Shown piece after piece: positions 1 through 53,262 of a stretch of 64,000 nucleotides of DNA. Position 1 is the stretch's first letter. Every line of letters starts with the position of its first letter. The position numbers were made by a program, and so were the translations under genes. The stretch comes from Phallusia mammillata (taxonomy: Eukaryota): the NCBI GenBank assembly GCA_965637545.1, contig OZ281494.1, positions 6,634,001 through 6,698,000 of the forward strand. The letters are read 5' to 3'. The notes beneath the pieces are model-generated. The model saw only the letters and a program-made list of their open reading frames with translations. It was not told the DNA's origin and made no database searches.

Positions 1-52
1 GCAAAATATTGTATTTTATTCAATGACTATTCCTTATTTCCAGAAAACAAAC

Positions 53-3357: not shown

Positions 3358-3429
<72 letters not shown>

Positions 3430-12839: not shown

Positions 12840-15800
12840 TTAAAGCTTACACGGTAGACATTCCTTTCTGACGTCCTCATCTATGATGCAATACAACAGA
12901 AATACGACGATTCCTTGCGATCCGTTAACAAAAAAGAAAGGGTGCTATAACATTTTTTGGTGTATATTTACTAAAATGTAATTAATATGTTGATAGTTAA
13001 AAAGATCCAATGTACAATTATTACCTGTGAAAAAAGCCAAAATCCAAGTTCCGCCAAGCATGAGAAAGAGTAAGATGAAAGACTTTGCTGCTCTCAACGC
13101 ATCTCCTGTCCCCGGATCTTCCCCTCTGTTTTGCAGTCGCCTCGAGTTCAGCATTACATGTGTTGTCTTCAGGATAATCATCAGGTTGATGAAAAGGACT
13201 AGAGCAAGAGGAGCGATGACCGTTGTGTAGAAGATCGGAGTACCAGGCGTCAACCAACATCTGTCGTATTTTTGACTCTGTATAAATTGGTTACACTTCT
13301 CGTACAATGGTTGGGGCTTTATGTAGATTCCCATGAGAAACCCCACAGTAGTAGATATTCCTGCTAAAACAGCGGGAATAATCCAGCTAATCAGCATAAA
13401 GACCCTGAGACGTTTCGTCGAATCCTGAGTTTGAAACTCGACTGGAAAGGAAGTCGCCATTAACAGACGAATTCCTTCTACCAGGGTCGACATTCCTGAA
13501 ACAAACGATTTAATCGATCACAAACAAATCTTTAAATGGTTGAATTATTTAGTTAGTTATTTACCTGCACAGAGCAACAAATATTGATTAGCTGCTGTGT
13601 GAATCACACATGGAATTTCGTGCATCACGGCAAGATCATGAGACATGTTGACAGCGTGAAAGAGCAGAAGAGCCAGTGACAGGCTAATTTGAACCGGAAC
13701 CCGATCTCCACTGTGTTTCGAATTGTAGAGGATTATTATGGTGGCAATCAGAAACACGACTGATGTTGATTCTGTGACGTAAGATGTGTTCTGAAATAAA
13801 ATATTGCCTAATCATGAGTTGTTTGTTAAGTTGACATTTGAATCTTTACCTTAACACCCCTTGGTATGGTGGTGGATTCGACAGCCAGTAAAACTGTGAA
13901 CAAGGTGAGATGATTGCATTTGCAAGTGACGTTGCCTGTTATGTCATCAGTAGTTGTGACGCAACCACGATCGGAGTACTTTTCTTCAACTCTGTCGAAG
14001 TAAAGACAGATTGGTTTCATTTTGTTGATAACAAGGTTGGCATTGCTGATCTTTCTCGCTTTGATTTTCTTGCAGACTGATTCTGTTGACATTGGAAATA
14101 CTGTGAAATTTGCTCTCCCTTGAAGATGATTGCTTTCCTCGTTGCTGGTTGAATAGTTGTTGGATGTGGGTTTGAAGCTGTCTGCATTTCGACCAACAAT
14201 ATTAATAAAGGTTGTGTTCAATGCAGCTTCATACTTTGTTGAGGTTAGGGAGCCGGCTTGGAGCGGTTGCATCTGTACAGTTTTTGTTGTGTTTATCTTA
14301 AAGACATACACATCGATAACGACTCGTTGAACCCCGTTTGTCTGCAATGAGAAGTCAATCTTAGATGATACCAGCTGTATAGTTGAGTTATATGTCGCCT
14401 GGTTGATGTTTTTAACAACGATGTACAGTTGAGCTTCTCCATAATCATAAGTGGATCCGTTGGTTTCAGCATGAGTATGGGAAAGAATTCCAATTTGTTT
14501 TCCAATTTTTTTTATTTCTCCAACATTTAGTAAATTATTTTTTCCCAACTGTTGGAGAAATGACAGGGCTGCAAAAAACAACACCGTTAAAACAATTATA
14601 TACTACGACTAGCTCTCCATACTTTTATTAGGACAAACATTTTGTCATCCTTAATTGTAAAACGAACTAATATATTGTCATTCGGTAAGTCACTTTACTA
14701 TGGGCAAACAGCGCATTGAGGCATTGGGAGAAATGGCTATCAGGAGATTGTAAGTGACTGTTTTGATATGAAATATTTTGTAAATTAGTGCATGTATATT
14801 AGAATACTCACGTTTCACTTGGCAAGCATAGTAAGCCGGATCTCCACTGCAATTCATGCTTGACTGCTCCCATCCGATCCCATAATGCAACGCTCCCTGC
14901 TGGCAAGTTGTAACGTTGGAAACGGGAAAGTTTGCCGGAGATCCGTCGCTCCAATACCAACCATTCAACGACGTGTTGTAACGAGCTCCAAGGAAAATAT
15001 TTAGGTCTGAAAATCGTACACGAAACGGAATGTTTTGCTGAATTTAATTGTTTATTTTCTTTTTTTAACCTGGTACCAAGAACGATCCCGTAAATTCTGC
15101 AAATCCCCCATATGGCTCATTGACACTTCGTAATAGGTGTGAGTTGCTGCCACCATAGTAATTAAATATTTCCGTTTGGCCTTTTTTGTTATTAGTTTCA
15201 GAATACAGGATGTACTGTAATGTCCATCCTGAAAAATAGTAAATGAAATTGTTTTTGAAAGACGATTAATGTTTCAATCATATGTATTTGTCAGTAGGCT
15301 AAAACTGCAGCCCAAAACATAAACGGGGTTCCATCGCCGCGTTTTTAATGCGGTACTTGGATTTTGAGCTTTAATTGAATTCTTTTGTTTCAAAGATTTT
15401 GGTAAGAATTTCTTTGATTTTTTTTAAATGTTTGATTCCGTTTAATACACAGATAATTCTTGTACTCACCTGCAAATTTACAATGTCTTTTCATAGTTAC
15501 TGCCCATCTATACGGACTCCAACCCAAACAGAAGTAGATTGGCCGATACTCGTTATCAGGATTACTGTAGAAATCACCAGAAAAAATTCGAAAAATCAAG
15601 AATATATGTTTTGTAGTCTTAAAAAGAATGTCAACACGTTTTAATCATTTAACTATCAATGAAAATCTGTTCTGACGAATAGTTTTACCTCTCATATAAG
15701 TCGAAATACCACAGATGTCCGATATATTTGGTACTTTTCCAGAAATACACTTCAGTCGCATTTTTTTGAAAATTTGTATCGTTCGTATTTGACAGGGTCG

Positions 15801-16699
15801 TGAAAAACATAAACTCGCTGCAAAACTGAAATAATTTACATTTACTAAATCCATATCTAATCATCAAACGTTTCAACTGCTTTGACGTATATTTTAAAAT
15901 ATGAAAAAATCAGGTGTATTAACTCTAATTATCTTCCTTGAACAAATATTTTTTTGAAATAAACTATTAATTCATCAAGTCCGAACCCAACCTTATGTGT
16001 ATTTATCTGTCATAAGTTGAGTGAGAGTTGTGTTAATCTGTGGGTCATCAGTCATTGCAAGATTTCCACCCAGCAAAGAACATTTCTCCTGTGCAGTGTT
16101 TGCATCCACGAGATCGTCAGATAATATCAAAACAATTTTATTCATTGCTTTCCAAGTATTTTCGCTACCTGGACATGTTAAATTGAATTTTAATCATATT
16201 TAAGTTGTTGGCGCAAAGATTTTCTTTAAATTATTATGTTTTAGTGATTATTTAAAAGCGCTAGATTGAACTCGTATCTGATAAAAAAGTATACTTATGT
16301 CTAAGACATTAAAAAGAGTTGCGTTTGCGTGTGCATTGTGGATAATTGGTACTTGGTCTTTTCTTGAGTATTTGTACAGTTTTGCTGAGTTTCAACAACA
16401 GTTATTGTGATTTTACTAACAAAATTCTTGTAATATTGTGCTTTGGATACAAATAGAATGTGGTGAAAGCTTTTTACATTTGTTACATTTCATTACACAA
16501 TTTAACGCTGTTACGTTTCATCACACATTTTAAATACGTACATTTTTCTTTTGCTAAATTAACCAATACAGCTACATAATGTTGTCATAATCGTGACTTT
16601 CTCAAATACAAAACGCAGTGTGTTAAATCAATTTTACTTACTTGTGGAACTAACTAGTAACAAAGTTACCAGTACATTGGCTAGAAATTCTTTTGTCAT
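12840..16699 (-). pseudogene. aGPCR-1: adhesion GPCR with split C-type lectin ectodomain, probably pseudogenised
   Basis: Signal exon 16642-16699 (MTKEFLANVLVTLLLVSST); lectin exons 15992-16168, about 15689-15826, 15470-15564, 15070-15228, 14812-15006; GAIN exon 13870-14568 (CKCNHLTLFTVLL); 7TM exons about 13565-13790 and 13025-13497. Lesions: TAA at 15993-15995, +1 A at 15761-15767, and the acceptor plus start of the TM7 exon deleted near 12930. Confidence 0.8.
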
Positions 16700-17935: not shown

Positions 17936-20900
17936 TTAATTGTTCATTGATACTCTGTTCATTTCCTCTCTCAGTGCAGAGTAGGGGCTAGCGCTCCAAT
18001 CGTAGTACGCATAGAGAGGTGTGAAAGCAGATTCGGTCATCTCTTCGCCATCGTCTTTCTCCTTCGCGTCAACCGAACCGAAGACGCTTTCCACATAAGC
18101 AGGTGGTGGATCTACAAGCAAAAGATCGTTGGTTCGAATCTCGGGTAATAAGCATTTGTTTGACAACGTAAAAGTCCTAAATATCAATTCCCTGTCGTAG
18201 CATATTGGATATTGACAAAGACCTCAAAACGGAATTCAAAACTGTGGTAAAGTAAACAAAAATCATGTTTATTTGGTTGTCTGCTTAGTAAATGCTGCCT
18301 TAATAATTAAATCTCATTGCCAGTGAAGCAAAGAACTGTATTAATATTTCATGACTGCAGAAAATTTCAAAATCAGTCGCTTGTATGCTTATCAGAAATT
18401 CCGGTATTTTTATTTAAAGCTGTTGCCGATATGTTACCGGTCTTATAGTTTTAGGCGAACATTTTTTTCTGTTGTACATTGTGCTTTCACATGGGTTACA
18501 GATCCTAAATATTGAACCATTTACAGAAAGCAAGTAACAATAATAATCTTACAATTCTGAGGCGCACTGTCTTCTGGTAGAAGCGGAAAAGTGCCAACTC
18601 GGATCGGTAAAGTCAAGTCAATGTTCTTTTTGCATGTGACCCGAATCTGTAAATTAAAAACTTCAGTTCGTTTGTTTGTTTTCTGCGAAGTTCGTTTCCA
18701 AGACAAGATACACGGAGCCGAACACGGCAATTTTATTTATTTTATCAAATTTTGCCTTGCATACCAGTTTTCAAGTCATTATCAACTTTGATAATGTCAT
18801 AATTTTGAAATCCATGTTATTTTGCCACTTTTAAGTTTTTCAAATACAATTACTGATGTAGACTGTTACCAACACTTATAATATTACCACATTTAAAGTT
18901 AATGTTATTTTGTCACTTCTTAGGGTTTTTTGCAGTCGCTGTCTGTCCCAACATTTTAGAATTTCAAACGGACCTGCAGTCTGTGTTTGAGATCAATGAT
19001 GCTGCAACCAGGAAGATCTGATGGAGGAAGACTTGGGATCAAAATCTTCCCTTGCCATTCACCTGTGGCGTTTTCTAAAAAGCAATCACAACTGTTTCAA
19101 ATACGATAACCATAAATTTCCCCTTCATTGTTTAGAGATTGAGATTTTCGTCAAAAATGTTGTTTCAGTTTGTAGTTATGGTATATATTTCCTCAAAAAG
19201 GATACATTTTAATATTCTACCATTCTTACAAAGTGTTTTAAGCCAAACTTACATTGACGTATCTCCGTGTTTCTTAACATTAAAACTAACACAGATTTTT
19301 AGGTACCTTTAACTGCTATATGTTCCTTAATTTTGGCTGCTGATGATTTGGTGACGTATTTTAGTGTTCCCAAAGCTTTACCATAAAACTTCGATTTCTG
19401 AAAAAAAAAATTGTCTGTGAAATGTAATGTAAACTTCTATTTGTTGGGCAGTTAATCAAAAATCGAAAAATCTTTTAGGTTCAGAAAACCGAAAGAGCTG
19501 TAAAGGAGAGGGTCGCCAATATAAACTAACACTCTACATAAAATCACCTTGTCTCATAAATAAAAATATATTTTGCTGGATATATATGGATGTATTTACT
19601 CCAAAACGACATTTGACCGAAAAAGATGCAGGACAAATACAACTAACCAAGTAAATGTGCTTTTCGGAAAGTCGTTACTGCAATAAACACTAGACAGAAA
19701 CACGCTCAATTTAAAAAGGTTACACAGAAACATATAACGTACTTGTTCCAACTTGACCTTGACCGCAGTGACGTCATATTCACTCTCGTTCTTGAAGGTG
19801 AGTGATATGTTGATGACCTCACCAGGGACGTAACCACCTTTGTCACACGAAGCTTCCACCAGCAGGGGGCGCCCTCCGAAAAATCCCTGTTTTTTTTCTT
19901 CGAAAACTTTCGGCATAATCTATGTGTTAAAAATTTGGTTATGTAAATAGCCAATTTGTTTACAGTTGCTGTATTTGAATTCGTGATAGTTGATATCTTG
20001 ATAACCATTTAATGATTAGTATTGTATTTACCTTAGCCTGTGGGTCTTTGTTAAGGTCAGTTGTAGGCACCACTGTGAATATTTTCTTTGTAGAGATATC
20101 TCTTCCCGATGGAATGTCAAACTTTACGTAAATTGTGTAGCGCACCCAACCGACACAACCTAAAACGAAAACACAAAGTTTATGCCAAAAAACAGAGTGT
20201 ATGTAGAGCAGGTTTGTCGGGGTATTGGCATTATGTTGAATTTACTGACTGTTTAACAACGCGTGACTATAAACATAATTTGGTGAATAAAAAGCGAAGA
20301 AAAGAAAGATTTTGTTTCAGTAAAGACAAATTTATGCAAATTGTTCAGCCGGCATTCGTTGACCTTCAAAAGTACATGGCGAGTTCTCTGAAAGAGTAAA
20401 TGAGAAAGGAAACTCGCTGACACCAGATGGCAGTGTTTCGCCCTCCCAAGACCGTCCACCTTAAAAAGAGAAATAAATAAATAATGAAAAAGTAATAATT
20501 ACGTGGATTGAATGCGTAGTTCAACGCCACAAGACTAAATGTGATAAGTCATAGGTTTACAGTTGCCCTCCGCCATTTCAAGTTTAAACCCGAACATTAA
20601 GTTGTTCAAAAAATACACGCTGATCATGTTATATGTAAACAGAGTGGTATACCAGTAATTATGAACAGAATTGACTGCATACGTATGCATGCATATCACT
20701 GTAGACAAATGAAAGTTTTAAAGTATTCCCCCCCCCCCCAAAAAAAAAATATTCACATGTTAACTAAATATAACTTAATATTTAACTTCCTACGCCATTA
20801 TTTAACTTGTGATGTGACGTTAGTTATTTTTAACTTACTAGAAGGCCACACCGACACAGTTTCGTCGGCGTAATATTCTTCTTTCTCGTAATACGCCTTT

Positions 20901-21508
20901 CTTGCAGCGTCGTACCAACCGTTGTGAGCTTTGCCGCGAAATCGAACTTCTACAGCTGAAACAGATTAAGTTTATATCAGAGACAACTGTCTGCAACTAA
21001 AATAAATTAACTTTGTGTAACATAATGATGGCAGTTCAGGCTAAAACACTTGTGCGGTAAGCCAAAATTGTGCAGTAATTTGAGCTTTAGGTATACCTAT
21101 GTATAGGATTATATTATTGAAGCTGATAACAAGACGTTAACCGCACGGCATGGCAGTTTATTGAAGCTTACACGCTGAACTTGACCTTAGCCTAACTATT
21201 TTATTAGAGCCAACGTTGTCTATTAGCACTTTTGCGATCTTATAAATCGCAACAGTGTCCAATGACTGGAGCACACTCATGTTTAGATGGGTATATTGTT
21301 GTTTATGCAACAGTTGTGGCGAAGCAACTGAGACATTCTAAAGTCAGGGTGAGTTCGGCAATCCAGAATAAGTAAAACCAACCAGAGTTAGCTCACCTCG
21401 ACACTGGAATGGAGAATCTGACGAGGCCAGGACTTTTCCTTCGACCTTTTCTCCCGGTGAAAACACCGCAGGATTTTTTGTAAACTCGACTCGGATTTTG
21501 GGACCCAT
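17936..21508 (-). CDS. Alpha-arrestin (arrestin domain-containing protein, ARRDC-like), 9 coding exons, intact
   Basis: Exons 21397-21508, 20839-20955, 20364-20459, 20032-20159, 19743-19919, 19307-19397, 18974-19074, 18553-18646, 17936-18111 splice in frame: VFSPGEKVEGKV, FRGKA, FPFSFTL..CTFEG..GWVRY, KGGYVPGEVI, IPSLPPSDLPGCSII, LPIRVGT, C-terminal PPPAY. Confidence 0.92.
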
Positions 21509-21860
21509 TTCAGTTTGGCAAATGGTTGAAATTGGAAGCACTTAAATCTTGTATGTTTTGTAATCACTGAAAAAATAGTGTATACTTTAGAATTGCGTGT
21601 GGTCACAGTCTTTTTTGCAGTTAGCCACGAGAAATCGACAAACTTTATTTCTGTCAAATTGATGAACTTATGTCTGAACTTATGACTTTGTAACGCTTTC
21701 TGAAACTTGGCAAATCAACTATTCTGACAAAAAATGCTCCCACTTGTTAAATATTTCGTTCATACATCCCTTACATTCGCTTTATGTTGCAAAAACGTAA
21801 TATGCCCAGCTAACGCAACGCGTCAAGTCAGCCTGTTCTCGATTTATAGCCGTCTGTTGA

Positions 21861-24474: not shown

Positions 24475-27286
24475 TTATCTAATTGAAGAAGTTTCGTGTT
24501 GTTGTCTGTTTGCAACAATAACATTTGATCCCAGCCCAGTGCTTCTTGTGTTATGCCAGTGTGAGGAAGCAGCGTCAGTTGTTTTACTCAAGAAAGGAAA
24601 GATTTTCACTCTGATTTCGTCATTCATGACGCAGTAGAGCACGAAAACGACGACTCCCTGCGATCCGTTCACCAAAGTGTGGATGTACATGGTGGCCGCA
24701 CTCGAAATCTTGTTTCCGAATCCTTCACACAAAAACGCACAATAAATAGGGTAATTTTTGGATTTTTTAAACCATTTGCCCCACCTGTGAAAAATGCCAA
24801 AATCCAAGTTCCACCGAGCATCAGAAAAATAAGGAAAAACGATTTTGCTGCTCTCAGTGTTTCCTTTGTTCCAGGATCTTCTCCTCTGTTTCGCATCTTC
24901 CTTGAATTGAAAATCACACAAGTCGTCTTCAGTATGATGAGTAAGTTGATGAAGAGGACGAGAGCAAGAGGAGCGATGACCGTGGAGTAGAAGACCGGAG
25001 TACCAGGAGCCAACCAGCATCTGTCATACCCGGGAGTGTTGTTACATTTTTCGTGTGATATTTTAGGTTTCATGTAAATGTTAAGTGGAAACCCAATGCT
25101 ACTAGCTACAGCCGCGATTAAAACTAAGACAATCCAACCGATGACCAGGAATATTTTCAGTCGTTTTGAAGGATTTTGTGCTCGAAATGTGTACAAGAAT
25201 GATGTGGCCATTAGAAGACGAATTCCTTCCACAAAAAGCCACATTCCTAAAACACAACAAGGTAGGAGCCACTTTCTATATGATTGAGCACTATCTTACC
25301 TAATGCTAGCAAACAGTAATGGTTGATCACTGTAATAATCATACATAGGAGCTTGTGCGTAACGAACAGATCATGTAGAATGTTGACAGCTTGGAGAAGC
25401 AGAAGAGAAATCGACAAGTTTATCTGTACAGGAATTCTGTCTCCATTGCTTTTGAATCGATTGAGGATTGCTATTGTTGCTATCAATGCTACGATGGATG
25501 CTGACTCCGTCATGTAGCTCGTGAACTAAATAAAATATACTTAATAACCTAAATTGGTAAATTTGTCATGAGAGTATTGCTAAAAAGTAGCATTTGCTTT
25601 AAATTAAAGTTTCTTGCATTTAAATTGCAGAGTTACAATGCGATTTCAACACAAAGTAAATATACGACTAACCTCAACGCCGGTTGGTATCACGATTGAT
25701 TCCACAGCCAAAAGTACGGTAAAAATACTAAGATGGTTGCACTTGCAAGTGACATGACCCGTTACGTCATCCGTCAGAGAATTTTCTTGCAACTTCATCG
25801 TAAAATAAACACTTTGGTTGAATTTTCTGTTCATGAGTTTGCCTGTGCTTTTATTTTGGTCGTCAATTTTTTGACAACTGGATTCTGTAAAGGTCTGAGG
25901 CATGACAAAGCTTACGTGCCCGGGTAATTGCTTATTTTCTGTAGCTTGATTAGACGATTCTATAAGCTCATCAGCATCCCATGCAACAACAACGATAAGG
26001 TTTGTGTTTTCCATGACCAGGTACCGGGTGGTCACGAGGGAGTCTAAATTTGCTGGACGAGTTTGTTCAATTATCTCCGCAACATCTATCTTGTCAACTA
26101 AAACAGCAGCAACGAGACGTAAAACGTTACTTGTTTCCAGTGTAAAGTTGATGTGAGATGATCCCAGTTCAAGGTTTGAGTTGAACGTATCATTATCAAT
26201 GTTGGTCACTATGATATGTAGCTGAGTATTTCCACGACTGTACGTGAATCCGTTTGAATCGAAATGATTTCGGGAAAAGTCCATGATTCGGTTTTCGATG
26301 TTTTCTAATTCTTCGTTATTGGTCAGATTCAACTTTGTCAAACCGGGTGGCACTAAACATTGCAATAAATATTTGGCAACTGGTGCAATGACAACCGACA
26401 AATGAAGCCAGTTTATATAGTAAGTTTAAATAATCATAAAACATTATAACCAACAAAGACTTACATTTGCAAGATAGCACGAAAAGTTCATTTGGACGTA
26501 TTTGATTTGGTTGCAGTGACTAATCAAATTCTGAAATTGTAGGAAACACTGAGGTTGTTCTCACATTGACTTTTTATTGTATTTTCAGCTTGAGATATAT
26601 TGCAGATTGTCGTGCAAAAACCGGTTAACATACAGACCCTATTGATAAATACAAACATCTCTTAAGTTACTATGTGTTGATTACTGATAGGAATAAAATC
26701 ATTGAATCATAACTCATGTAAACAAATCTCACTTACTTTGAAGAGTTTGATGCTGATATGAAAAGAACAGATTTAAATCGAAGTAGATTGTTGTTGGCGC
26801 ATTTTATGTCAATTCCACTTCCCCTACGAACTAAAAAAGCAATCTCTGGCATGCGAAGTAATTTTAGTTCTAACTTATGTCTTTAAAACGGCACTTATCT
26901 ATGCATTGCTTGTAAGCTTAGGTTTTGTATCGCTGACAATCGGATAAGTGTTGGGTGGCATTTAACTGACCTTGAAAAAAAAAACAAATTGAAGTAAACT
27001 AAAACAAAAACTGTTGTCCATCACTAAACCAAAGTTTCGACACACAATGACGAATCCGCCTTCGCGCTTACTGCTGCTTATCGCAACAAAAGAAGTAATT
27101 TTGTTCCATACTTACAGTAACTAATACATATTAACTTGGTTAAGCGTCAATCAACAAGAATTGCCAAGTTTACAGCTACACAATGCTGTTTTGGATATTC
27201 CGATAAATTTCAATCTTACCGTCATTGCAATATAAAACCAGGAGAAACATTGACGCTAATATATACTTGGAGAATACTCTCTTCAT
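24475..27286 (-). pseudogene. aGPCR-2: adhesion GPCR with SUEL/rhamnose-binding-lectin-like domain; frameshifted ectodomain, open 7TM
   Basis: Signal exon 27220-27286 (MKRVFSKYILASMFLLVLYCND); SUEL-like exons 26737-26830 and 26465-26638 (CEN.PQC...SHCNQIKYVQMNFSC, -1 near 26555); GAIN exon 25673-about 26352 (CKCNHLSIF); 7TM exons 25300-25525, 24785-25246, 24475-24722 (VNGSQGVVVFVLYC). Confidence 0.7.
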
Positions 27287-30737: not shown

Positions 30738-30758
30738 CTACATATGAAATAATAACAT

Positions 30759-40647: not shown

Positions 40648-43089
40648 TTTTATTACAACCAGTTAGATTCTATATATTACACAATTAACGCTAATGACTG
40701 TCTTTGGACTGCTAAGCAAATTGATTGTTGGATACAATAAGCGAGAGGAATTTAAGCAAATTCCAACCAACTTAAATGTTAAATTTTTGATAATAGTAAA
40801 AACTTCTCAAACCTATAAGTTATACTTTCGAAAATTAGACATGGTTCTTGTGGGTAGCACTGCCTAATTTCTGCATCCACGCTATACAGTCACAAAAGCA
40901 ACTTCATTGTCCAACTAGGTCGTGGTCGCCTGAGACAAGACCAACCAATCGAATTGCGCCACAGTATGCGTCTACACACAGCACATTCTGACATAACAAT
41001 CCAGCTCAGAAACAACAAGGAATGTTAGATTCCACATATGACACGTATGTAGCAAACGTGTTACAAACGTCTTGTTACACTGCTAGATCTATTTTCGTGG
41101 TAACGGAGAGTAATTTGAAAGGAACGAGCCAGTATTTCGTGAATTTTGCCAGGATGCAGTTATACGTAAGAGCTTAGACAATCTATAGACCGGTCGTTTT
41201 AATCCTCAAATGTACCGACGTGATTGTTTGCACGTTTAGTTTACGCCGTAACCGTAAACTTTACTGTCTACGCGATTATTTAAAAAAAATACCTTTGAGC
41301 TTTTCGGCTAATACCCAGGAGCTGTCAGTCAGTTTTAAAGCAAATATTTTCTTTTTATAAAGCATAGATCCACATAGTACATTTCAAAAACAGAATGACT
41401 GGCGCTAAAAAAAAGTTAAGCAACCGTTAGGCGCAGAACACAACGTGTTCCACGGGAAAGACGCGGGCAGTCACCGGCATGTTGCCATCAGCCATTTGTG
41501 CCGTAACCACGCACTACCAATTTGCAAAAAGGCACACACAGAATGTAAATCAATTTGTGACATATGACATTATGCGAAAATTGTTCCCAGTGGTAGCTTT
41601 TTGTTTATTGTTGCGAAGTATCACAACTCATCGTAACAGATAAGTTCGAATTGACTACTTTTTGTGATGTTATGGGCTCACATGTTAAATGTCGTAGAAA
41701 GGCGCGTTTGTTGACCCAAACCGCCAATGTCAGTCTGGATGCTGTCGGTTTTTATTCCATTTTTTATAACTTTTTGTTATTTTAATATTGGTCACATTAT
41801 ATTGTAAGTTTATGTTTTCTCTGAGTCAGATGATGCCAACAAGGTTAAAAATTCTAAAATTTATGATGATTAAAATTCTAAATTTAAGGTATTTGTGATG
41901 ATTCTGGTATAGTATCAAGTTACAAGTAGGCTGAATGGGATGCGATGTAAGTAATTAATTGGGAGAAACAGGTTTAAATTGTGTGTGCACTTTATTGGTT
42001 ATAATTTCTCTGCAGATGATAATAAAGCAAGACATTTTGTTTGCAAATCGAAAACATTTCCATTTGAAAATATAATCAAAATTGTTTTTTACTTTATTGC
42101 ATGTTTTTATTGTGGTCGTTGGGTGTCGCTCTTGTGTTGTTAAGTGACATATGTTGCAGGTTACCGAGATTTAAACGTAACAGACAATAAAAGGACCTGC
42201 TTCCTTACAATTACCAACTGTTAGGCAACAAATTAGATGTACGCAGTTCATGTGACAAGCTTACCAAACACCCATTTTGGTTTCAAACTTGTTTCCTGTT
42301 TATTCACTAATTCTTAAAGCACGTGTTGCTTATAAAGTTGACATTAAAAATACAAATTTGCGTAAACTAATTCTTGAAAGTGTTGATGTACCAGACCATA
42401 AAAATACAAAGCAAGGTATTTTTTATATGATAAGATGAGAGCATGTACCGATTGGCTTCTTGTGACAGGTTCTTGTACGATTATAATTAGACGTTTGGTG
42501 CTACAGAGCTGTAAAAAACTGACTTGTGGTACATACTTTGCAAATTGCTTAACACGAAACTGAATGTTGTAAATCTTTTTCTTTGCCGCTGATTACTGCA
42601 CTCTATTAGCTGAGCTGTATTCCTCAGTTGAAAATTACTTCTGTCTAAGTTGATTCTTTGGTTGGAAAAGCAAAATTACCCAACACAATATAAATCATAT
42701 TGATGGGAAATGGTGTTGATCACTTTGTGTTCCCTCTTTATAAGAGAACTTATTTTCCAATTTAAGTTCAATTTGAATAAAGTTGTTAATGATAGCGTCT
42801 CAGCACAAACGAAACCTGATATTGAAAGCAAATTAGTGCTAGACTTGACTTCAACATAGATAAGGTCATTTAATGCTGGCGATTCACAGTACAATAGCAA
42901 TTACTAAATGCCTACATGTTTGAAATATCAGGGAAATTATTAAATTAAAAGTTTTGACCAAAACATATATTCACAGTCTCGACATGATTTCAAACAAATC
43001 GTTAAAACATTAGGGAACAGCAAAAGTTTCGACACAAAGTCATATCATTTTATGTAAACAACGCCAATGATTTAAATGTTTAACGGTTT

Positions 43090-44230
43090 AGAAAGCAGTG
43101 AAATGTGATCTTGCTGTCAATTGCAAGAGTCTGATGTCGTCATCAATAACGCAGTACAGCAACTAGACAACGATTCCCTTCGAACCGTTAACCAGGCTGT
43201 GGATGTACATGAACACCTCGTTTAAGCGCTGTTGCCGATTGCTGCAAAAGAAGACATTCGTTGCTTAACTTAAAGATGGTTTACATTAAATGAAGAATGG
43301 TTATTTCACACACATTTAATTATTACCAGTGAAAAAGCCAAAAACCAAGTTCCGGCGAGCATGCAGAAGAGTAAAATGAAAGACTTTGCTGCTCTTAACG
43401 TATCTACTGTCCCTGAATCTTCTCCTCTATTTCGTATCCTCTTTGAGTGCATCATCACACGTGTTGTTTTCAGGACAATCACAAAGTTGACGAGGATGAC
43501 TAGAGCAAGAGGAGCGACCACCGTTGCGTAGAGGATCGGAGTACCAGAAGCCAACCAGCATCTGTCGTACTTGAGAATCGGAATAAATTTGTTACATTGC
43601 TCAAACATTGGTTGGGATTTTATGTAGATACCGAGGGGAAAGCCCACAGCCAAGGATGTTGCCACTATAAAAGTGGAAAGGATCCAACCAATGAGCATGA
43701 AGATCTTTAGGCGTTTTGAAGAATCCTGAGTTTGAAACTCGACTGGAAATGAAGTCGCCATTAAGAGACGAATTCCTTCCAACAGGAACCACATTCTTGA
43801 AACAAACTTGATTTCAGAGGATGATGATTTCTATCGCGTAATTATACTGGTATGTGTAGCTTTTGCTTCAGCCACTGTTTTGCATTGTGTTAGATCAGTT
43901 ACGTGAATACCTGAGCAGAGCAAAAGGTTTTGATTGGCTGCTGCGTGAATCACACAAGCAACCTCATTTAAGACGGCGAGATCATGTGATATGTGGACGA
44001 CGTGAAAAAGCAGAAGAGCCAGTGACAAGCTAAATTGAACCAGAACCCGATCTTCGCTGTGTTTTAAATTGTAGAGGATTAATAGGGTGGCGGCCAAAAA
44101 CATGATGGTAGCTGATTCAGTGGTATAAGATGTGACCTAAGAATCAAACGTCTTGAAAACACCGATGGTAATTTTCAAGGTTGAATGTATACCTTCACGC
44201 AAGTGACGTTGTCTGTTATGTCATCAGTTG
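43090..44230 (-). pseudogene. aGPCR-5: truncated pseudogene (7TM exons only)
   Basis: 7TM exons about 43911-44136, 43327-43797 and 43090-43241 homologous to neighbours; GAIN exon reduced to about 38 nt; -1 at the end of the TM6 exon and a TAA early in the TM7 exon. Confidence 0.88.
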
Positions 44231-45993
44231 CAAAGTTGCATGATCTGAATTAAACAATACTTGTCAGTAATAAGCTGCAATGCTTAATTCCTTAACATAA
44301 AATTCTTAGTGTAAATTCTTAGTTTGTGTGATGCCTGATTGTATGTGGTCGTTAGGTGTCGCTCTTGCTTTGTTAAGTCGAATATGTTGTTGGTTACCAC
44401 GGTTTGAATGTGACAGTCAATACATGTAACCGCTTCTAAACACTTGTCAACTGTTGGATAACAAATTGGTTCATGTGACATGCTTTCCAAACTTCCATTT
44501 TGTTTTTGGACTTGTTTCCTGTTTGTTCACGATCCCGATTTCGAAACAAAATTATTGAAGCACCTGCTGTTCATAAAGTTGACATGACATTAAAAATACA
44601 AGTTTGCATCAACTAATTGTTGAAACTATCGATGTAACAGACCATAAAAATGCCAAACAAGGTATTTTTATGATGAGTGCATTTACTGATTGACTTTTTG
44701 TGACCAATTTTTGTAAGTTTGTATTCGAGGAATGATGCTGCAGTGCTATGATGTGTGGTGCATAATTTGCAAATTGCTAAATACGAAACTGATAGTTGTA
44801 AATCTTTTTCGTTGGCGCTAGTTGCTGCATTCTATTATCTAAGCTGCTTTCTCCAAAAGAAAAGCACTTTTGTTTAAGTTGATTCATAAAAGCAAAAATA
44901 CCCAACACACTACAATTATGTTAGTGGGAAATGGCGTCGGAACACTTTTTGTTCCCTGTTTTTAAAGGTAGTTATAAAAATTTATGATTGCGTCTTAGCC
45001 AAAGGGAACCTGATTTTTGAAAGCATTTTTTAGCTAGACTCGCTGAATGCAAAAGTGGAACAGGGCTAGGTGATTGTTTATGCTTGCGTTTGGATTGGCA
45101 AAGCCTAGAAGTTGTAATCCGTCAAATAAAGGTATTACATTTGAAATGACGTGTTTGCTTATACAGTGGCATTTTGAAGTATATAACCGTGTTTCAAAGT
45201 GAATCGTTCCGTTTTCGATTTTAGGTAATTTCCTGTGGAGATATTTTGTTTGCGCAATAAATAAAGTGTTTTTGACAAGATATATAACACACCAGACAGC
45301 CTCATAACATCACACCACACGCATTTATTACAAAGGTTACAACACATTATGGTAGGTTCAAAGGAAGCATAGCGTTGTTGCGTGACACCGATTTTCTGGG
45401 ATTTTAACGTCAACTGGCGTCGTAAAGAGTCGGATGACAGAAACAATACAGATTTCAGTTCGACAAAAAATTCATTGGTAAAAATCATGAGATTAAAGCA
45501 GGTGAGAATTAAAAGACAATATAGCAGTAACTGAATGCCTACATCGTTAAAATATCAGTGTAGTAATTACATTACCGAATTAGTCAATACTACACTTCAC
45601 ATAACTAGTCAATACTACACTTAACTCTTTGTTCTTTCTTCACAGATGTCGAATGTTTTCAAACAAACATAACTAAAGAATTAGGGTATAGGAAAATTTT
45701 CGACTCAAAATGATTTTGATGTAAACAACGTCAATGATTCAAAATGTAACAGGTTAAATGTTTAACTGTGGAAAACGTATTTGCATTGCACAACATTCCA
45801 TAATGTTTACTTAGTAAATCACGGAAGTTGAAAAGTGAAAAAAGAATATATTGTTCTCTTCTAATATTGTTTTGCCACAACCCAAATGTTTTATTAAAAG
45901 AGTTGAATAATTAGTAACGTTCTATTGAAGAAAGTTTAAACATCTACTTTAGTTAAGGTTTGAACTTTGACCCCCTCCTGTATCTGCCTTGTG

Positions 45994-48900
45994 TTACTGC
46001 TGCCCATGTCTGGCAACAGCCAAACAATTGCAAGAAAATATTTCTTGTCTAATTTCGTCATCAATAACGCAGTATAGCAAGAAGACGACGATTCCCTGCA
46101 ACCCGTTCACCAAGCTGTGGATGTACATGAACACCTCGTTTGAAGTACCGTTACCGATTCCTGTAAAAAATGTACTTCCTTGCTTAGCTGTAGCATGATG
46201 CGTCTACTGAAGGTTGGTAAGTCACACACGCCTAAATATTTCACCTGTGAAAAAGGACAAAACCCAAGTTCCGCCGAGCATGAAGAATAGTAAGATGAAA
46301 GTCTTCGCTGCTCGCAACCCATCTCCTGTCCCTGGATCCTCTCCTCTGTTTCGCATCTTCCTTGAGTGCAGCATCACATGTGTCGTCCTTAGGACAATCA
46401 TGAAGTTGATGAAAAGGACGACAGCAAGAGGAGAGACAACCGTTGTGTAGAAGATCGGAGTACCAGGGGCCAACCAGCATCTGTTGTATTTAAGAATCGC
46501 AATAAATTCGCTACAATGCTCATATAAAGGTTGGGGCTTCATGAACATGGCAAGGGGAATGCCCAGAGCCAAGGATATTCCCACTATAGTCACGGGAATC
46601 ATCCAACCAATCAGCATAAAGATCTTGAGACGCTTTGATGAATCCTGAGTTTGGAACTCGACTGGAGACGAAGTCGCCATAAAGAGACGAATTCCCTCCA
46701 CCAGGAACCACATTCCTAAAAAAATTCAGAAAATGATAATTTTATCCAAAAACTGCACTGGTAATAAGTTGGTTCCATTTCAACCTCTCTTTTCTGTTGT
46801 ATTAGATAACTGGTAAAATTTGAAAATTGGAAATGTCATGATTACGTAATTACCTGAGGAGAGCAAAAGGTATTGACTGGCAATAGTCTGAATCATGCAA
46901 GTAACATTATTCAGGACGGCAAGATCATGTGCTACGTTGACGGAGTGGAAAAGCAGAAGAGCCAGTGACAAGCTGATTTGAACCGGAACCCGATCTCCGC
47001 TGCGTTTCGACTTGTAGAGAATTATTATAGTGGCGACCAGAAACATGATGGATGCTGACTCAGTGGTGTAAGAAGTGACCTAAAAATCAAAGCCTTGTAA
47101 CCACCAAAGCACATTTTAAAGGTTACAGCTAAGTGTTTTTACCTTCACGCCCTTTGGTATTGTGATAGACTGGACAGAAAGTAGAACAGTGAAAAGGGTG
47201 AGATGGTTGCACTTGCATGTTACATTGCCTGTTATGTCATTAGTAAATGTGACGCAACCACGATCGGAATATTTGTTTTCAACTTTGTCGAAGAAGAGGC
47301 AGATTGGTTCTAGTTTGTTGATCATGAAATTAACCCCGTTTATGGTTTTTGCTCTAACCTCTTTGCAGAAGAACTTCAAGGAGATCGGGGGTCCTATGTA
47401 ACTCACATTTCCTGTCAACTGATGGCTTTGTTTAGCGGCAGTTGATCGTTTGCGACCCGAGCTCAGGAAGCTATCCGCGTCCCAAGCTATTATAGAGATG
47501 TAGGTTGTGTTTAACGTAGCTATGTACTGGGTTTGGGCGAGAGAACCGAATGTGACAGGTTGAGTCTGTGCCGTTTCGGTTATGTTTATCTTAAAGACAA
47601 ACACTGCAATCACGAGTCGTCTAACCCCATTTGTTTGTAGCCCAAAGTCGATGCGAGTTGAACTAAGCATTACATTTGAATGATATTCACTGTGGTTATG
47701 TTTGACATTTTTAATGTATAATTGGTCGTTGTCGTCATACGACGTTTTATTTGTTTCGTATAGTTGTCTTGCAGCGTTCTGCAAAAAACTCTCAACCATT
47801 TCCAGAGCATCTGCATCCGCTGGGTTGAGGTTTTCCGAATGTATAAACAAAGAAGACACGCAGTCTAAAAAGAAACAAAATGTAACGATTGTATACTGAG
47901 TATTGTTTTTTCTCACCGTTTCGCACAGGGTCCAATTGTTTACCATACGAACAAAGCATATTATCTTTTGAGTACTTCTATTTTTTGAGCGTTGGAATAG
48001 AGTAGTATATAAAGCAGCTGATACAAATGAGAAGATTGTTTACTTTTGCCTGTTGTGACAAAATGCAGGGAACAGCCATCTTTGACACTACAGCTTTATT
48101 TGAACATCAAGTTTAATCATAGATCAGCCTTGTAAAAGGTTATTACAGCATGGATTCAATAAAAACATTAAAAACATTATGACTGTTTAACTTTGACAAG
48201 ACACAACCACCCAGGTATCATGATACAAAGCATTAAAAGTGAAAATATTTAAAAATGCTTATGATCGCCAATCAAACAATTACTGGTTGTTACTTGACCG
48301 ATTGATCACAAGAAAGCAACTGTTTAATGTTGTTGTAAAGTTGTGGTCTAACCTGTATTATTTCCACCAAAATTACAATCACAACTGAAGCCACCATCGG
48401 TATTGCTGCAAGCAGCGTTGAAGTGGCAGTTGTTCAAATCAGGTTTGGAGCATTCGTCGATGTCTGAAACGAGTGAACAGAAAATGAACAGTGTAATACA
48501 AATTATTTTGTTTCTGCGCCGTCGCGTTCTGTATATACTCAAAAGGTGTTTGGTTGATTATAGCCATTATGCTAAACGGGGTATAATTACAAGTTTACAT
48601 GCTATTCAAAAACAACAGCAAATGAAATCTAGAAGGGTGGCTTAGCCCATTTTGCCATTGCAATTAACCTATAACATATATTAAAACTTTAATATATTCC
48701 CTACACTCATTTTATATGGGTCCCATATTAACCAAATTTTTTATTGCCTTGGTTGTTTCTGCAGGAAGAGACTCATGGATCCCAATGCAAAGTTAAAAAT
48801 AGCGCATTTCAAGAGGTAACCATTACTAAGTTTGGTGTTGTAAAGTAAACAGAGATCAGTACTTGGCTTCAATAATCATGCTATTAAAAGTACAAAATAG

Positions 48901-51900
48901 ATTGAATTCAGACATTGTTTGTTGTTCTATTTAATCTTATATTATAATGGGAAGAAAATGCATAGTGAAATAAAGTAAAACACGACAATCGACCTCTATA
49001 AATGGCAATTTTTTCAGGCTGTACAAATTTCATTTAATTTAAACATTCTTAAAAAATTTCTCGTTTCAGGGAGCTGGTGAAGGTTTATGGAGACCAAAGG
49101 GTTGAACACAACAAATCGACACATATAAATGGCGTATCCAAAAAGCTATACAAATTTCAGTCAATTCCGACAGTGTTTCAGTCAATTCCGACAAAAAACT
49201 CGCCCATTTTCGGGAGCTGGTGGGGTAAAGGTGAGGAATAACGGGTTGAACACAACAATACACACATATAACTGACATATTCTACATGTAAACATGCCTG
49301 TAAAATGTTGTCCAAATCAACCAACGTTTTTTTAAATGTTTTTTGAGTAACAGCCGTTCACGCTTCCAAAGTAATCAGGCTGTTAAGAAAACCCAAACTG
49401 CCAACTGCAAAAGCATTCAATAAATGAGCCAATAACACAAGTAACGTATGTCTGGTTGACTTTATAACACTACAGAAACTTGTCGTTTGTGGTGCGCACC
49501 AACTACATTTCACACTTTGGGGGCTAACGGGGTATATACGTGGGTTATCATGACAAACAAAACAGATGGGGCATCTACATAGCTATATCTACCATCTGTA
49601 AAAGTTTCAGCCAAATCCACCAAACATTTCAAGGCAAAAGATGATGGACAAACTTCAGGAATGAAAAAAAGAAAAAAACAAAATAAATCGAGAAAAATCA
49701 ACACGCGTCCGATTCAGGGAAAGGGACCCATAATACCTGTACATGTTATTCCGTTTCCTGTAAAACGAGAATTACAATCACAAATGAAGCTACCGCCGAT
49801 ATTGCTGCAAATAGCTTGCATGTGGCAGTTGTTTAAACCTGGTGTGGAGCATTTGTCGATGTCTGCAACGAGAAAATGAACAGTATATTGCACATATTTT
49901 AATTTCTCTGGCTGTTGCGTTCTATGTATACATATATAAGGTGTTTGATTGATCATAGTTATTTTGCTAAACGGAGTATAATTACCAGTTTACATGCTAT
50001 TCAAAACCAACAGCAAATTAAAACTATTACCTGCACATGTTGTTCCGTTTCCTGTAAAACCAGATTTACAATCACAACTGAAGCCACCATCGGTATTGCT
50101 ACAAGTAGCGTTGAAGTTGCAGTTGTTCAAATCGGGTTTAGAGCATTCGTCCATGTCTGCAAGGAGGAAATGAAAAGTACTATACAGTTCTTTTTGTTTC
50201 TGTGACTGTTTTATCTATCTATATTAGTGATGTTTAACCGCGGTTGCCGTGGCCGCATGCGGCTCCCAACTGCTTATTTTGCGGCCCGCACCAAACCTCA
50301 GAAAACAACCAAACATTGCTATTTTAGCTTCAAGGTAATAAGCTTCAGTTTTTTTCTTAACTTTCGTTTTTGCGGCTCCCTACACACTTATGAAAGAATC
50401 ATTTAGCCCCGACAACAAAAAAGGTTAAAAATCACTGATCTAGATGGTGTTTGATCGGCTATTGTCATTATGCTAAAAACCTACAGCAAATAAAAAATAT
50501 TACCTGCGCATGTTGTTCCGTTTCCTGTAAAACCAGATTTACAATCACAAGTAAAGCTACCGTCGATATTGCTGCAAATAGCTTGGATGTGGCAGTTGCT
50601 CAAACTGGAATTAGAGCATTCGTCAATGTCTACAACAACAAGTCAACAGTTAACCTGTAATACGAGTCATACACAAAAAATAATACCCCACTAACCTATG
50701 CAAACCTTTGATAAAATAAGTTTGTATCCAGTGTTGCAGATGCACGTGTATGTTCCAACAGAGTTGGTGCACGAAGCAGTTTGTAGGCCGCAAACCGTTT
50801 CGTTTAAGCATTCGTCAATATCTAGACGATAGGTTTTCTGTCAATTAGTGAGGCGTTCATAAACCCCAGATCGCACAAACCAAAGTTTATTTCGTTTACT
50901 TTAGTGCCGTTTCGAATTAAAGCAGTCTTGTAGTAAAAAGTTTTAATTGCTAAACATTTGCCTTTTTTGAATCAGTCTGCGATAAAATGCCAGCGTAAAA
51001 AGGGCCCGCAGTCCAAGAAAGGCTAGCAAACCCTGTTTTAGGTGACTCTATCTATATGCGGTTTGTAGTGATTATACAGTCATTTTATGAAACGGAGTTT
51101 GATTACCACTTGCCTTTAACAAACAACCAACCACATACAAAAATTATTGTTTTCCAGCTATGTTCTTACCTGCACATGTTGTTCCATTTCCTGTGAAACC
51201 GCGGTTACAAGAGCAAGTGAAAGAATCAACGGTATTGATACAAGTAGCGTCGATGGAACAGTTGTTTAAACCCGGTTCAGAGCATTTGTCTGGAATGGCG
51301 TCAATCGTTATAACCTTTTGTCAAACCAGCCTAAGAAAAATGTTACCCGACATACCTACGCAAACCTTTGCCGAATTAAGTACGTATCCAGAGTTGCAGG
51401 TACACGTGTAACTCCCAACAGAGTTGGTGCATAAAGCAGTATGTGGACCGCAGGCAGTACCGTTCACGGCGCATTCGTCAATATCTACAGGTTTGTTTGA
51501 AATGAGATTGGAAAACGCAATCGCTTACAGTTTCGCAGTAATACAGTTGTTGCTTCAATACTACAACACAGCAGTTGACATAATTGCCAAGAGGTTCGGT
51601 AAAAAGGAAAACAGCAGTCATTACAAAGCAGTTACAATATCAAATTAAACAAAAACCAAACAATATCAAATTACTATACTGACGGTTAAGATAATTACCT
51701 GCTTTCTACATAAAACAGTATTACCAAATCACTCCTGTTAAGCAATGTTTTGGTGTGGTATCGTGTGTCAAAATGTTTTACGATAACACCTAGTCGTTTC
51801 GAAAACTTCAGCTCACAGTTTTGGCTTATAAAGCTTCTGTGTATGTCTATGTTTTATAAAAAAAAAAAAAAAAAGAACCTACCTGTGCAGGCTGTTCCTG

Positions 51901-53262
51901 CTGGAACAATGGGTGTAACAAACATTTTTGTGCTTTGGTCGTTAAAACCACTCTTACACTTGCATTGGACCAAAGAAAATCCTGGTTCTGTGCAGTTGGC
52001 GTTCATATCGCAAGGATGGAGGTTGGTCTTGCATACGTCAGCAACTGAAAGATGAAACATTAAACTGAATTATTTATAAATGACGAGATTGTCTGTTATT
52101 CACGAACATTTAAGCAATAATCCTGCATTCATGTATGTAAAACAATAAAGTTTGTTTCTAAAATTAAGGGATTTTATGTGTAGAACTAAGATTGTAGTGG
52201 TTTGATTGAGTTAAAAACATACTTCCGATGTTGCCAAGGGCCAGAATAGCGTCTCGTGTTGATTGGGCGATAGATAAATTTGAATTGGCGATCACTTCAA
52301 CCGATGCAATAATCGTGCCTCCTAAACCATCCGGAATCGTGTTGCTGTACATGACAATAACTGAAAAAAGTTTTGCTTGCGAATTACAATCAATTTGAAT
52401 GCGTTTGAAGCACTCTTTTATGATAGAACGCTTAGCATAAACCACGTTAGACAGTAAAAGAAAAAAGTGCGCGCAAAAACAAGATAAAAATTCCACCGAT
52501 ATTTACAAAATCACAGGTCAAGTTCACAAAAATCCTAAATTTAGCGTGTGGAGGGAAATTTTGGTCACTATAAAAGAAATATTAACTTATTTGCAGCGTT
52601 AAAATCAGATACTCGACCTGCCTTACAACAAGCGTAGAGTCAAGGCAATTGTCACTACGATAAAATAACTTATTTTTTATTTCTTGCTTATAACTGAGTA
52701 TGCCATTAAGAAAAGCAATAATATTTATTCATCTTAACTCAAATATTAAAAAAAAACTGAATTTAACGTGTGAAAAAATATTAAAAGACCCACGTCTAGC
52801 GATGGTTTCCGATGCAGACAACAAATAAAATAAAGAAAAAACAAGCTGATTTACGATATTCCTTTAATTGGTGGTCTAAAAGGATTTGACTAAAGTTAGG
52901 TCAAGCATTGTGCTGATGAAAGTTACTCAGGCCTCTGTAAAACTACACCTTCCCACATTGATTCTTTGGGGGCTCGAATTCCACCAAAAGTCTGTTTTTA
53001 TTTTGTTGTTGTGGTATGCATTCTCGCATGAAAATGCTTAAAAAAAACGGCTTGGTACATCTTATCATGCTTGTCGGCTCCAGTCTTTAACTTAATTTTA
53101 TGTTCCTAAATTCATGAACATTCGCTAAAATGAGCATGAACATTTTCATGAACAGTTTGTTGCCGAAGTTTTTACATTAAACTTACCTGCGTCAGGTACA
53201 ATCTGGGTTGACACGCAACTGGCCAATGCAGCCAACAAAGCAATACGAACTACGTAGTTCAT
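45994..53262 (-). CDS. aGPCR-6: EGF-TM7-like adhesion GPCR (signal, partial SEA-like exon, 8 EGF/cbEGF, GAIN/GPS, 7TM); appears intact
   Basis: Signal exon 53187-53262 (MNYVVRIALLAALASCVST); 52223-52360; EGF exons 51883-52044, 51356-51484, 51170-51289, 50696-50821, 50504-50629, 50031-50156, 49737-49862, 48353-48463 (DIDEC motif in most, all phase 1-1); GAIN 47143-47864; 7TM 46854-47079, 46245-46715, 45994-46160. Confidence 0.88.
48629..49733 (-). mobile_element. 1.1-kb non-coding insertion, Helitron/Helentron-like non-autonomous repeat
   Basis: Absent from the paralogous intron near 50020; ends CTAGAAGGGTGGC...GGGACCCA are shared with the copy at 62165-62650; minus-strand 3' end is CTAG; no TIR or TSD seen. 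Confidence 0.5.
50225..50437. mobile_element. Short hAT MITE in an EGF intron
   Basis: TIR TAGTGATGTTTAACC / GGTTAAAAATCACTG, TSD ATCTATAT / ATCTAGAT; absent from paralogous introns near 48540 and 49935. Confidence 0.8.

Follow-up and report, generated by a model that had tools for sequence, protein, structure and literature searches.

An adhesion GPCR array of Phallusia mammillata as a probable segment of a large ascidian-specific family with a shared core and subfamily ectodomains

INTRODUCTION

Lineage-specific expansions of adhesion-class G protein-coupled receptors (aGPCRs) with shuffled domains have already been described in Ciona and amphioxus, and the subject of this study, an array of six aGPCR paralogs in a 64-kb stretch of Phallusia mammillata DNA (C1:6,634,001-6,698,000; hereafter, the window), is of this known kind. 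The Ciona set comprises 30 aGPCRs, 24 of them unclassified and probably ascidian-specific, with 21 in which only the GPS was recognized and two with EGF repeats (Kamesh et al. 2008, PMC2396169). The unclassified receptors have no vertebrate orthologs, and their paralogous groups are 52 to 57% identical in the transmembrane (TM) region (PMC2396169). The amphioxus aGPCR expansion features novel N-terminal Cys-rich domains, including Lectin C-type, and domain shuffling has been proposed for it (Nordstrom et al. 2008, PMC2246102). A literature search returned no paper on the Phallusia version of this family. We propose that the window is one segment of a large ascidian-specific aGPCR family which combines a fixed four-exon chassis, ectodomains that belong to subfamilies and a high turnover, a reading which we regard as very probable.

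Like the Ciona set, the Phallusia family is ascidian-specific and unusually dense, with few EGF-bearing members and with most members lacking a Pfam-recognizable N-terminal domain. It differs in its size of at least about 60 loci, about double that of the entire aGPCR complement of Ciona (30), in having lectin-bearing members, and in that mucin-like exons or small Cys modules of a conserved kind are present in its "domain-less" members; sea-squirt aGPCRs described as "GPS-only" probably bear small modules that are absent from Pfam. With amphioxus it shares a lineage-specific expansion and the placement of Cys-rich domains on a GAIN/seven-transmembrane (7TM) unit, whereas the lineage is different, the expansion is independent, and both the exon-phase basis and a possible neighboring donor gene are visible here. 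While class-level knowledge is unchanged by this locus, it affords an unusually clean exon-level view of aGPCR ectodomain diversification, with phase-1 docking at the GAIN exon, modules that are phase 1 at both ends (phase 1-1) and a plausible donor nearby.

Certain copies, numbered 1 to 6, also recall vertebrate subfamilies. Copy 6 resembles ADGRE5/CD97 and the EMR receptors in carrying calcium-binding EGF domains in tandem, each on an exon of its own, ahead of a compact GAIN domain and a 7TM region, yet among the aGPCR groups matched the family 7TM profile scores lowest on ADGRE5 and ADGRE1 (84 and 81 bits, respectively); copy 6 is also placed within the ascidian clade, so that this likeness is one of convergent architecture. 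Copies 2 and 3 resemble latrophilins (rhamnose-binding lectin [RBL]-olfactomedin [OLF]-HormR-GAIN) in having an N-terminal SUEL domain before GAIN and 7TM, but exons for olfactomedin or HormR were not found upstream of them, the lectin joins GAIN directly, and their 7TM is not latrophilin-like. The profile was searched against the PDB in place of phmmer with single 7TM exons, which gave no or marginal matches, and its best-scoring solved 7TM was that of ADGRD1 (GPR133; 111 bits), by a small margin over ADGRG2 (107 bits) and ADGRL3 (101 bits). Unlike in ADGRD1, no pentraxin/LamG domain was seen in the array.

RESULTS AND DISCUSSION

Six head-to-tail paralogs with a shared core

The minus strand of the window carries all six paralogs, arranged head-to-tail as the first-pass annotation had claimed, and each of the six exon sets contains a match to Pfam 7tm_2:

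12948-13517, minus strand: 7tm_2 match of copy 1
24672-25295, minus strand: 7tm_2 match of copy 2
27807-28436, minus strand: 7tm_2 match of copy 3
36226-36912, minus strand: 7tm_2 match of copy 4
43309-43830, minus strand: 7tm_2 match of copy 5
46225-46725, minus strand: 7tm_2 match of copy 6

On the main 7TM exon these matches reach E values of 1e-14 to 1e-18 in all six copies, and full-length relatives score 103 to 116 bits. The 7TM region is distributed over three exons, namely, TM-A (TM1 to part of TM3), TM-B (the remainder of TM3 to TM6) and the TM7 exon (TM7 and the tail), each of which was recovered six times by tblastn with the copy 4 exons, while the large exon upstream of them was recovered five times. 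Pfam identified the GPS motif in these five large exons, and it is intact, with four Cys residues (CKCNHL↓T, the arrow marking the cleavage site), in copies 1, 4 and 6. An AlphaFold2 model of the copy 4 large exon, built with an alignment of 24 paralogs (pLDDT 86, pTM 0.83), had as its best Foldseek matches in the PDB the GAIN domains of BAI3, CELSR1, CD97, GPR110, BAI2, latrophilin-1 (CIRL1) and GPR97; the exon, therefore, encodes a compact GAIN domain, more than a GPS motif, in which subdomain A is short, at about two helices. The sequence that follows the cleavage site, TLFTVLLAV/SV, resembles the known hydrophobic tethered-agonist strand.

The acceptor of the GAIN exon is phase 1 at the homologous position in all five GAIN exons, and the introns within the core are of phase 0 (GAIN/TM-A), phase 1 (TM-A/TM-B) and phase 1 (TM-B/TM7). 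Every definable ectodomain exon of copies 1, 4 and 6 is phase 1-1, which matches the phase-1 GAIN acceptor, and modules could, therefore, be gained, lost or exchanged without a break of the reading frame. The four-exon core that had been ascribed to all six copies stands, on the strength of its phases, GPS motif and GAIN fold, for five of them and fails for copy 5, whose GAIN exon is almost gone. Long near-identical stretches, reported earlier for copies 1, 4, 5 and 6, were not recovered, as identity between copies is only 65 to 80% at the nucleotide (nt) level and the longest exact match measures 29 nt.

Open reading frames (ORFs) across the whole gene are present only in copies 4 (690 amino acids [aa]) and 6 (941 aa), and disabling lesions (stops, frameshifts or deletions) occur in the other four (copies 1, 2, 3 and 5). 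Judged by their sequences, copies 4 and 6 alone look functional in the window; copies 1, 2, 3 and 5 are pseudogenes or are becoming so, and most window copies should accordingly not be counted as receptors in annotation. A seventh copy was sought by tblastn beyond 53.3 kb, where no core exons were found outside the assembly gap (a run of N) at 53352-53600.

An ascidian clade and its ectodomain types

Family loci number at least about 60 in the 240-Mb genome. Core DNA matches amount to at least 40 to 55, at 72 to 83% identity, and GAIN-exon matches to P0001, a deposited model, amount to about 50, to which a cluster of approximately nine loci of the type of P0003 (CAB3220058.1), a deposited P. 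mammillata protein, is added. TM3-TM6 identity is 47 to 72% among the six copies and at most 39% to anything outside the ascidian family; in a representative library the corresponding values are 47 to 77% within the family and at most 39% outside it. A maximum-likelihood tree was computed from GAIN plus TM1-TM6, the exons of each row being extracted individually before alignment; L016, L019 and L008 entered with their stops written as X, and L026, a duplicate of L002, was omitted. In this tree the window copies and their paralogs form one clade (support 100/99), apart from other ascidian aGPCRs, and the lineage-specific 7TM clade that the first-pass annotation had postulated is, with the identity gap described above, upheld. 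The 7TM regions do not group with ancient subfamilies according to their ectodomains, but constitute this single ascidian clade, to which ADGRD1 and ADGRG2 are nearest.

Within the clade, subclades are well defined, with supports of 100/100 for the EGF pair (copy 6 and its sister), 100/100 for the P0003 type, 100/99 for the Thr-rich type, 94/94 for the SUEL copies with P0002 and 100/99 for the small-module type. The window copies fall in at least four subclades, and copy 6 is nested among non-EGF paralogs. Ectodomain labels require 10 changes on the tree against a mean of 18.5 for shuffled labels. Because ectodomain types follow subclades to this extent, ectodomain replacement appears to have been occasional and old, to have been followed by whole-gene duplication, and not to be ongoing within the array. 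The earlier proposal of phase-1 exon shuffling is, therefore, retained with respect to the phase 1-1 modularity of the exons and set aside with respect to continued shuffling in the array. The description of the clade as "young" was also overstated, as the synonymous divergence (dS) that separates copy 6 from its nearest paralog already amounts to about 0.25 and the window copies represent at least four subclades.

Other ectodomain types in the fetched paralogs comprise mucin-like Thr/Ser/Pro-rich exons, short Thr-rich repeats together with unannotated Cys modules, and the P0003-type lectin-like exons, in each case ahead of the same GAIN exon. Pfam searches of ten upstream paralog stretches gave only one weak match, to Lectin_C in L024. 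The mucin-like repeat exons are located at L014:5660-6238, L017:5067-5609 and L016:5856-6113, approximately 1.2 kb upstream of the GAIN exon, and consist of units of about 20 residues which vary in number.

Of the paralog cores that were sampled, about one in four contains stops. Cores with stops or of a fragmentary nature outside the window (L016:7051-7779, L008:6619-7329, L019 TM-B and L010:1502-3360) indicate that pseudogenes are common in other clusters too. The birth-and-death turnover that had been suggested earlier is borne out by these cores, by the four broken copies of six and by lesions of copy 2 which vary by haplotype (see below).

The two intact genes, copies 4 and 6

Copy 6 possesses 14 exons with canonical GT/AG sites, which together form one open frame of 941 codons:

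53187-53262, minus strand: signal-peptide exon, ATG at 53262, phase-1 donor
52223-52360, minus strand: unannotated 46-codon exon, phase 1-1, no Pfam match
48353-52044, minus strand: eight EGF or calcium-binding EGF exons, one domain each, phase 1-1
47143-47864, minus strand: GAIN exon, HL↓T
46854-47079, minus strand: TM-A
46245-46715, minus strand: TM-B
45994-46160, minus strand: TM7 exon

The eight EGF domains previously read in this copy correspond to eight exons, seven of which score above the Pfam EGF_CA or EGF_3 cut-off, and the last of which (48353-48463) lacks the sixth Cys. Its paralog L012 encodes a signal peptide, the module, six EGF exons and GAIN, the first two exons being conserved. 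Between the two genes dS is 0.23 to 0.29, and the ratio of nonsynonymous to synonymous rates (omega) is 0.24 in GAIN and approximately 0.5 in the EGF exons (0.85 in EGF1); every Cys of the EGF exons is retained, while the introns are no longer alignable.

Copy 4 possesses eight exons with canonical GT/AG sites and a single open ORF of 690 aa:

41130-41180: conserved noncoding block
40587-40647, minus strand: exon 1, ATG and signal peptide, phase-1 donor
40420-40527, minus strand: small Cys-containing exon, phase 1-1, conserved in paralogs
39793-39852, minus strand: small Cys-containing exon, phase 1-1, conserved in paralogs
38893-39000, minus strand: small Cys-containing exon, phase 1-1, conserved in paralogs
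37199-37905, minus strand: GAIN exon, HL↓T (Pfam GPS, AlphaFold2 fold)
36917-37142, minus strand: TM-A
36375-36842, minus strand: TM-B
35942-36276, minus strand: TM7 exon with acidic tail

The small exons contain one to three Cys residues apiece, and none of the copy 4 ectodomain exons has a Pfam match. The 5' region of the gene consists of five short collinear blocks in common with L014, L016, L017, L018 and L019, separated by unalignable sequence; the AG and GTAAG at block boundaries are conserved in these paralogs, and indels are multiples of three. The second block includes a signal-peptide-like sequence and an ATG that is likewise conserved. What had been listed as unrecognized exons are, on this evidence, genuine exons conserved in five paralogs.

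The damaged copies 1, 2, 3 and 5

Copy 1 is disrupted in its lectin cassette and in TM7:

16642-16699, minus strand: candidate first exon, ATG and signal-peptide-like sequence, phase-1 donor, predicted from sequence and the phase chain
15992-16168, minus strand: C-type-lectin-like N-half exon, phase 1-1, in-frame TAA at 15993-15995
14812-15006, minus strand: C-type-lectin-like C-half exon, phase 1-1
13850-14568, minus strand: GAIN exon, GPS HL↓T (Pfam GPS)
13565-13790, minus strand: TM-A
13025-13495, minus strand: TM-B (Pfam 7tm_2)
12840-12970, minus strand: TM7 exon remnant, 5' half replaced (alignment)

The candidate first exon, for which no homolog was found, the two lectin halves and the GAIN exon chain in phase, with a single stop at codon 78; this TAA is the last full codon of the N-half exon, at which paralogous exons have AAA and ATT. 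The 5' half of the TM7 exon has been swapped for unrelated sequence that runs into a stop, and the sole in-frame alternative acceptor would leave half a TM7; the TM3 Trp, invariant in the family, is also missing. The split C-type lectin previously read here is retained as two half-domain exons, and its identity as a lectin is weakly supported: each half alone has no Pfam match, and the PDB matches on the correct lectin half (KLRG1, 0.025; CLEC4D, 0.12; Dectin-1; KLRB1) are weak and stand amid unrelated ones. Identity at the nt level to the neighboring lectin exons 41-207, 2445-2673 and 4316-4706 is 83 to 91% for the lectin exons of copy 1 and for one block that separates them, the similarity ending within approximately 25 nt of the exon ends. 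Because this exceeds the identity of the copy 1 core to any window paralog (only 65 to 80%), the cassette fits a later transfer or conversion between adjacent receptor genes, and it may represent an exception to the old and occasional shuffling proposed for the family.

Copies 2 and 3 carry SUEL lectin exons:

26737-26830 (94 nt), minus strand: copy 2 degenerate SUEL-lectin exon
26465-26638, minus strand: copy 2 second degenerate SUEL-lectin exon, out of phase
25673-26379, minus strand: copy 2 GAIN exon, HL↓S, GPS 18.4 bits (below cut-off)
25300-25525, minus strand: copy 2 TM-A
24785-25246, minus strand: copy 2 TM-B
24478-24722, minus strand: copy 2 TM7 exon with tail
about 30606-30700, minus strand: copy 3 second SUEL remnant
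29961-30053 (93 nt), minus strand: copy 3 SUEL-lectin exon (phase arithmetic)
29607-29800, minus strand: copy 3 SUEL-lectin C-half exon (PDB matches)
28767-29470, minus strand: copy 3 GAIN exon, GPS QL↓S replacing HL↓S/T
28476-28698, minus strand: copy 3 TM-A
27935-28417, minus strand: copy 3 TM-B
27739-27854, minus strand: copy 3 TM7 exon

The SUEL assignment of the first-pass annotation is confirmed with the addition that the domain is damaged in both copies. The C-half exon of copy 3 matches only rhamnose-binding lectins in the PDB (CSL3, 1.6e-4; RBL, 2.3e-4), and its Pfam SUEL_Lectin score of 16.8 bits is below the cut-off for a query that is half a domain; the copy 2 SUEL exons, in which the YGR motif and the first Cys are no longer present, gave no Pfam match. 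The first SUEL exon of copy 3 is one base short, at 93 nt, where its copy 2 homolog has the 94 nt that the flanking phases need; the frame switches at 30014-30030, a stop results at codon 18, and two further DNA read sets gave contigs that are identical at the frameshift site. Its core ORF remains open for 507 aa. In copy 2, Cys1, Cys2 and seven residues of the GPS are gone. Relative to the assembly, a 13-nt deletion at 24706 in the TM7 exon of this copy is present in both other read sets, and read set X1 has one extra base behind 26555, at the frame switch, which restores the internal SUEL frame. As the indels at 24706 and 26555 differ from the assembly, copy 2 is broken differently in different haplotypes.

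Copy 5 and the duplicated 3' flanks of family genes are arranged as follows:

42098-42743, minus strand: 3'-flank duplicate derived from a family gene, downstream of copy 5
43094-44246, minus strand: copy 5 pseudogene (GAIN remnant, TM-A, TM-B and TM7)
44332-45575, minus strand: related 3'-flank copy, downstream of copy 6
54193-54949: orphan 3'-flank copy, no core found beside it, separated from copy 6 exon 1 by the gap at 53352-53600

Only about 30 nt of the 3' end of the copy 5 GAIN exon are left (approximately 44199-44227), fused to the donor region, and both the GPS site and the tethered agonist are deleted. The TM-B acceptor is CAA instead of CAG, and further lesions are the loss of 1 nt, the replacement of TTC by TAG within TM7 and a changed donor. 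The stretches 42098-42743, 44748-45575 and 54193-54949 were considered as exons of copies 4 and 5 and rejected, being duplicated low-copy 3' flanks of family genes; the 3'-flank segment also occurs on the 3' side of the EGF-bearing paralog located at C1:6.54 Mb.

Exon linkage and origin of the family

The ectodomain exons are predicted to be spliced to the GAIN exon, as judged from open frames and conserved architecture. The closest proteins to the array copies are from P. mammillata and bear the NCBI name "adhesion GPCR D1-like." Apart from P0001 itself and P0003, homolog searches with P0001 (whole and TM3-TM6) returned only a single read-through fragment from Logan and distant ADGRG proteins of fish and birds, with no EGF- or SUEL-bearing transcript model in the database searched; P0077 was rejected as a family transcript, being intron read-through from another species. 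P0003, which maps with 97 to 100% identity onto C1:5.64 Mb, has a lectin-like exon joined directly to the GAIN exon.

In the large ascidian-specific family that we propose, a signal-peptide exon ending in phase 1 is followed by the subfamily's own string of phase 1-1 exons, be they EGF, SUEL, C-type-lectin-like halves, Thr/Ser-rich mucin-like exons or small Cys modules. A handful of ectodomain replacements would have preceded whole-gene duplication and dispersal among clusters. Gene anatomy, exon phases, lesions, family size, monophyly and GAIN fold are established by the data above. The intact genes are predicted to act as standard aGPCRs, in which the ectodomain would bind a ligand, cleavage of GAIN would take place at HL↓T, and the strand so exposed, beginning TLFTVLL, would activate the 7TM region.

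Several points weigh against this scheme. In the RNA runs searched, junctions in the window had no transcript coverage; copy 6 sequence words were found in none of the runs, which is no proof of silence, and runs X3 and X8 yielded just one 43-nt piece for copies 2 and 3, derived from a paralog. The deposited P0003 sequence could be either a cDNA or a gene model. Domain searches were run exon by exon, with spliced models assembled for frame and phase checks alone, and support for the C-type lectin identity of the copy 1 exons comes from weak PDB matches and from motifs. Ectodomain types were surveyed in approximately 16 of the at least 60 loci. Finally, the cores of copies 2 and 3 are still open, and their use from another upstream exon is possible.

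Among the alternatives, the best supported is that the cluster represents a working, diversified recognition repertoire (for glycans, microbes or self) kept by selection and by ongoing phase-1 shuffling. Ectodomains of the lectin and EGF kinds are typical of recognition, the EGF exons of copy 6 evolve faster than its core, the high birth-and-death rate with segregating null alleles is reminiscent of immune or chemosensory families, and the excess similarity of the copy 1 cassette to neighboring lectin exons suggests a recent transfer. This repertoire is nonetheless doubtful, as the four broken copies include every one of the three with a lectin, the RNA runs searched gave no sign of expression, omega above 1 was not found, and ectodomain types track old subclades and are not shuffled within the array. 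A bolder version, in which an ascidian innate-recognition system would re-arm one chassis repeatedly with neighboring modules while selection maintains ectodomain diversity and presence/absence polymorphism, seems to us unlikely; the copy 1 lectin cassette would be its example of a module borrowed from a neighboring receptor gene.

A recent in-place tandem duplication of the six copies, with ectodomains acquired locally thereafter, would agree with the head-to-tail order, with the duplicated 3' flanks after copies 5 and 6, and with the resemblance of copy 5 to a partial tandem unit. It is, however, very improbable in view of the low identity and short exact runs between copies and of the location of the nearest relatives, the sister gene of copy 6 (100/100) lying approximately 140 kb away and the best DNA match of copy 4 (83%) at C1:6.528 Mb. 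With its copies drawn from at least four subclades and the copy 6 sister at such a distance, the array does not appear to be a recent local burst.

Least probable of all is that the ectodomain exons are separate genes or dead fragments and the receptors short GAIN-7TM proteins like the 21 "GPS-only" Ciona models, for, although the deposited P0001 model begins just upstream of the GAIN exon and runs into intron sequence, the Ciona family was described as mostly GPS-only (PMC2396169) and the lectin exons of copies 1 to 3 are damaged, the GAIN exon opens in phase 1, has neither an ATG nor a signal peptide of its own and so needs an upstream partner, copies 4 and 6 run from signal-peptide exon through core as one open frame with canonical sites, phase 1-1 exons cannot be the last of a gene and EGF8 is not followed by a terminal exon, exon order is kept in paralogs although introns have diverged, P0003 joins lectin-like and GAIN exons, and the "GPS only" label of the 2008 models is probably due to small exons that were overlooked and to modules absent from Pfam.

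Neighboring genes and repeats

One or more lectin-bearing genes adjoin copy 1, and the array is interrupted between copies 1 and 2 by an alpha-arrestin-like (ARRDC-type) gene:

41-4759, minus strand: lectin-bearing neighbor gene(s), with N-half exons 41-207 and 4522-4706 and C-half exon 2445-2673
1467-1745, minus strand: single-pass TM exon in the lectin-bearing region
6490-8430, minus strand: 647-codon open frame with RVT_1 (125 bits), probably a non-LTR (long terminal repeat) retroelement
17939-21541, minus strand: alpha-arrestin-like gene
30686-34300: retroelement fragments, just upstream of copy 3

Successive exons of the arrestin gene match Arrestin_N (positions 2-148) followed by Arrestin_C, and its tail exon includes a PPxY-like motif. 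Among the fragments upstream of copy 3 are a plus-strand ORF at 32987-34300 with RNase H and integrase zinc-binding domains, a 183-codon minus-strand ORF at 30874-31422 and direct repeats at 30756-30915 and 31549-31708 that are 97% identical.

The stretch 41271-41562, considered as an exon upstream of copy 4, was rejected as a dispersed repeat of approximately 290 nt, which recurs at 55118-55409 and has at least 35 copies at 75 to 83% identity on many contigs, in the manner of a short interspersed element (SINE) or a miniature inverted-repeat transposable element (MITE). A small Cys-rich open stretch at 57525-57677 on the minus strand has weak Ly6/uPAR-like matches (QVR, DUF753 and DUF7368; E values of 0.001 to 0.04).

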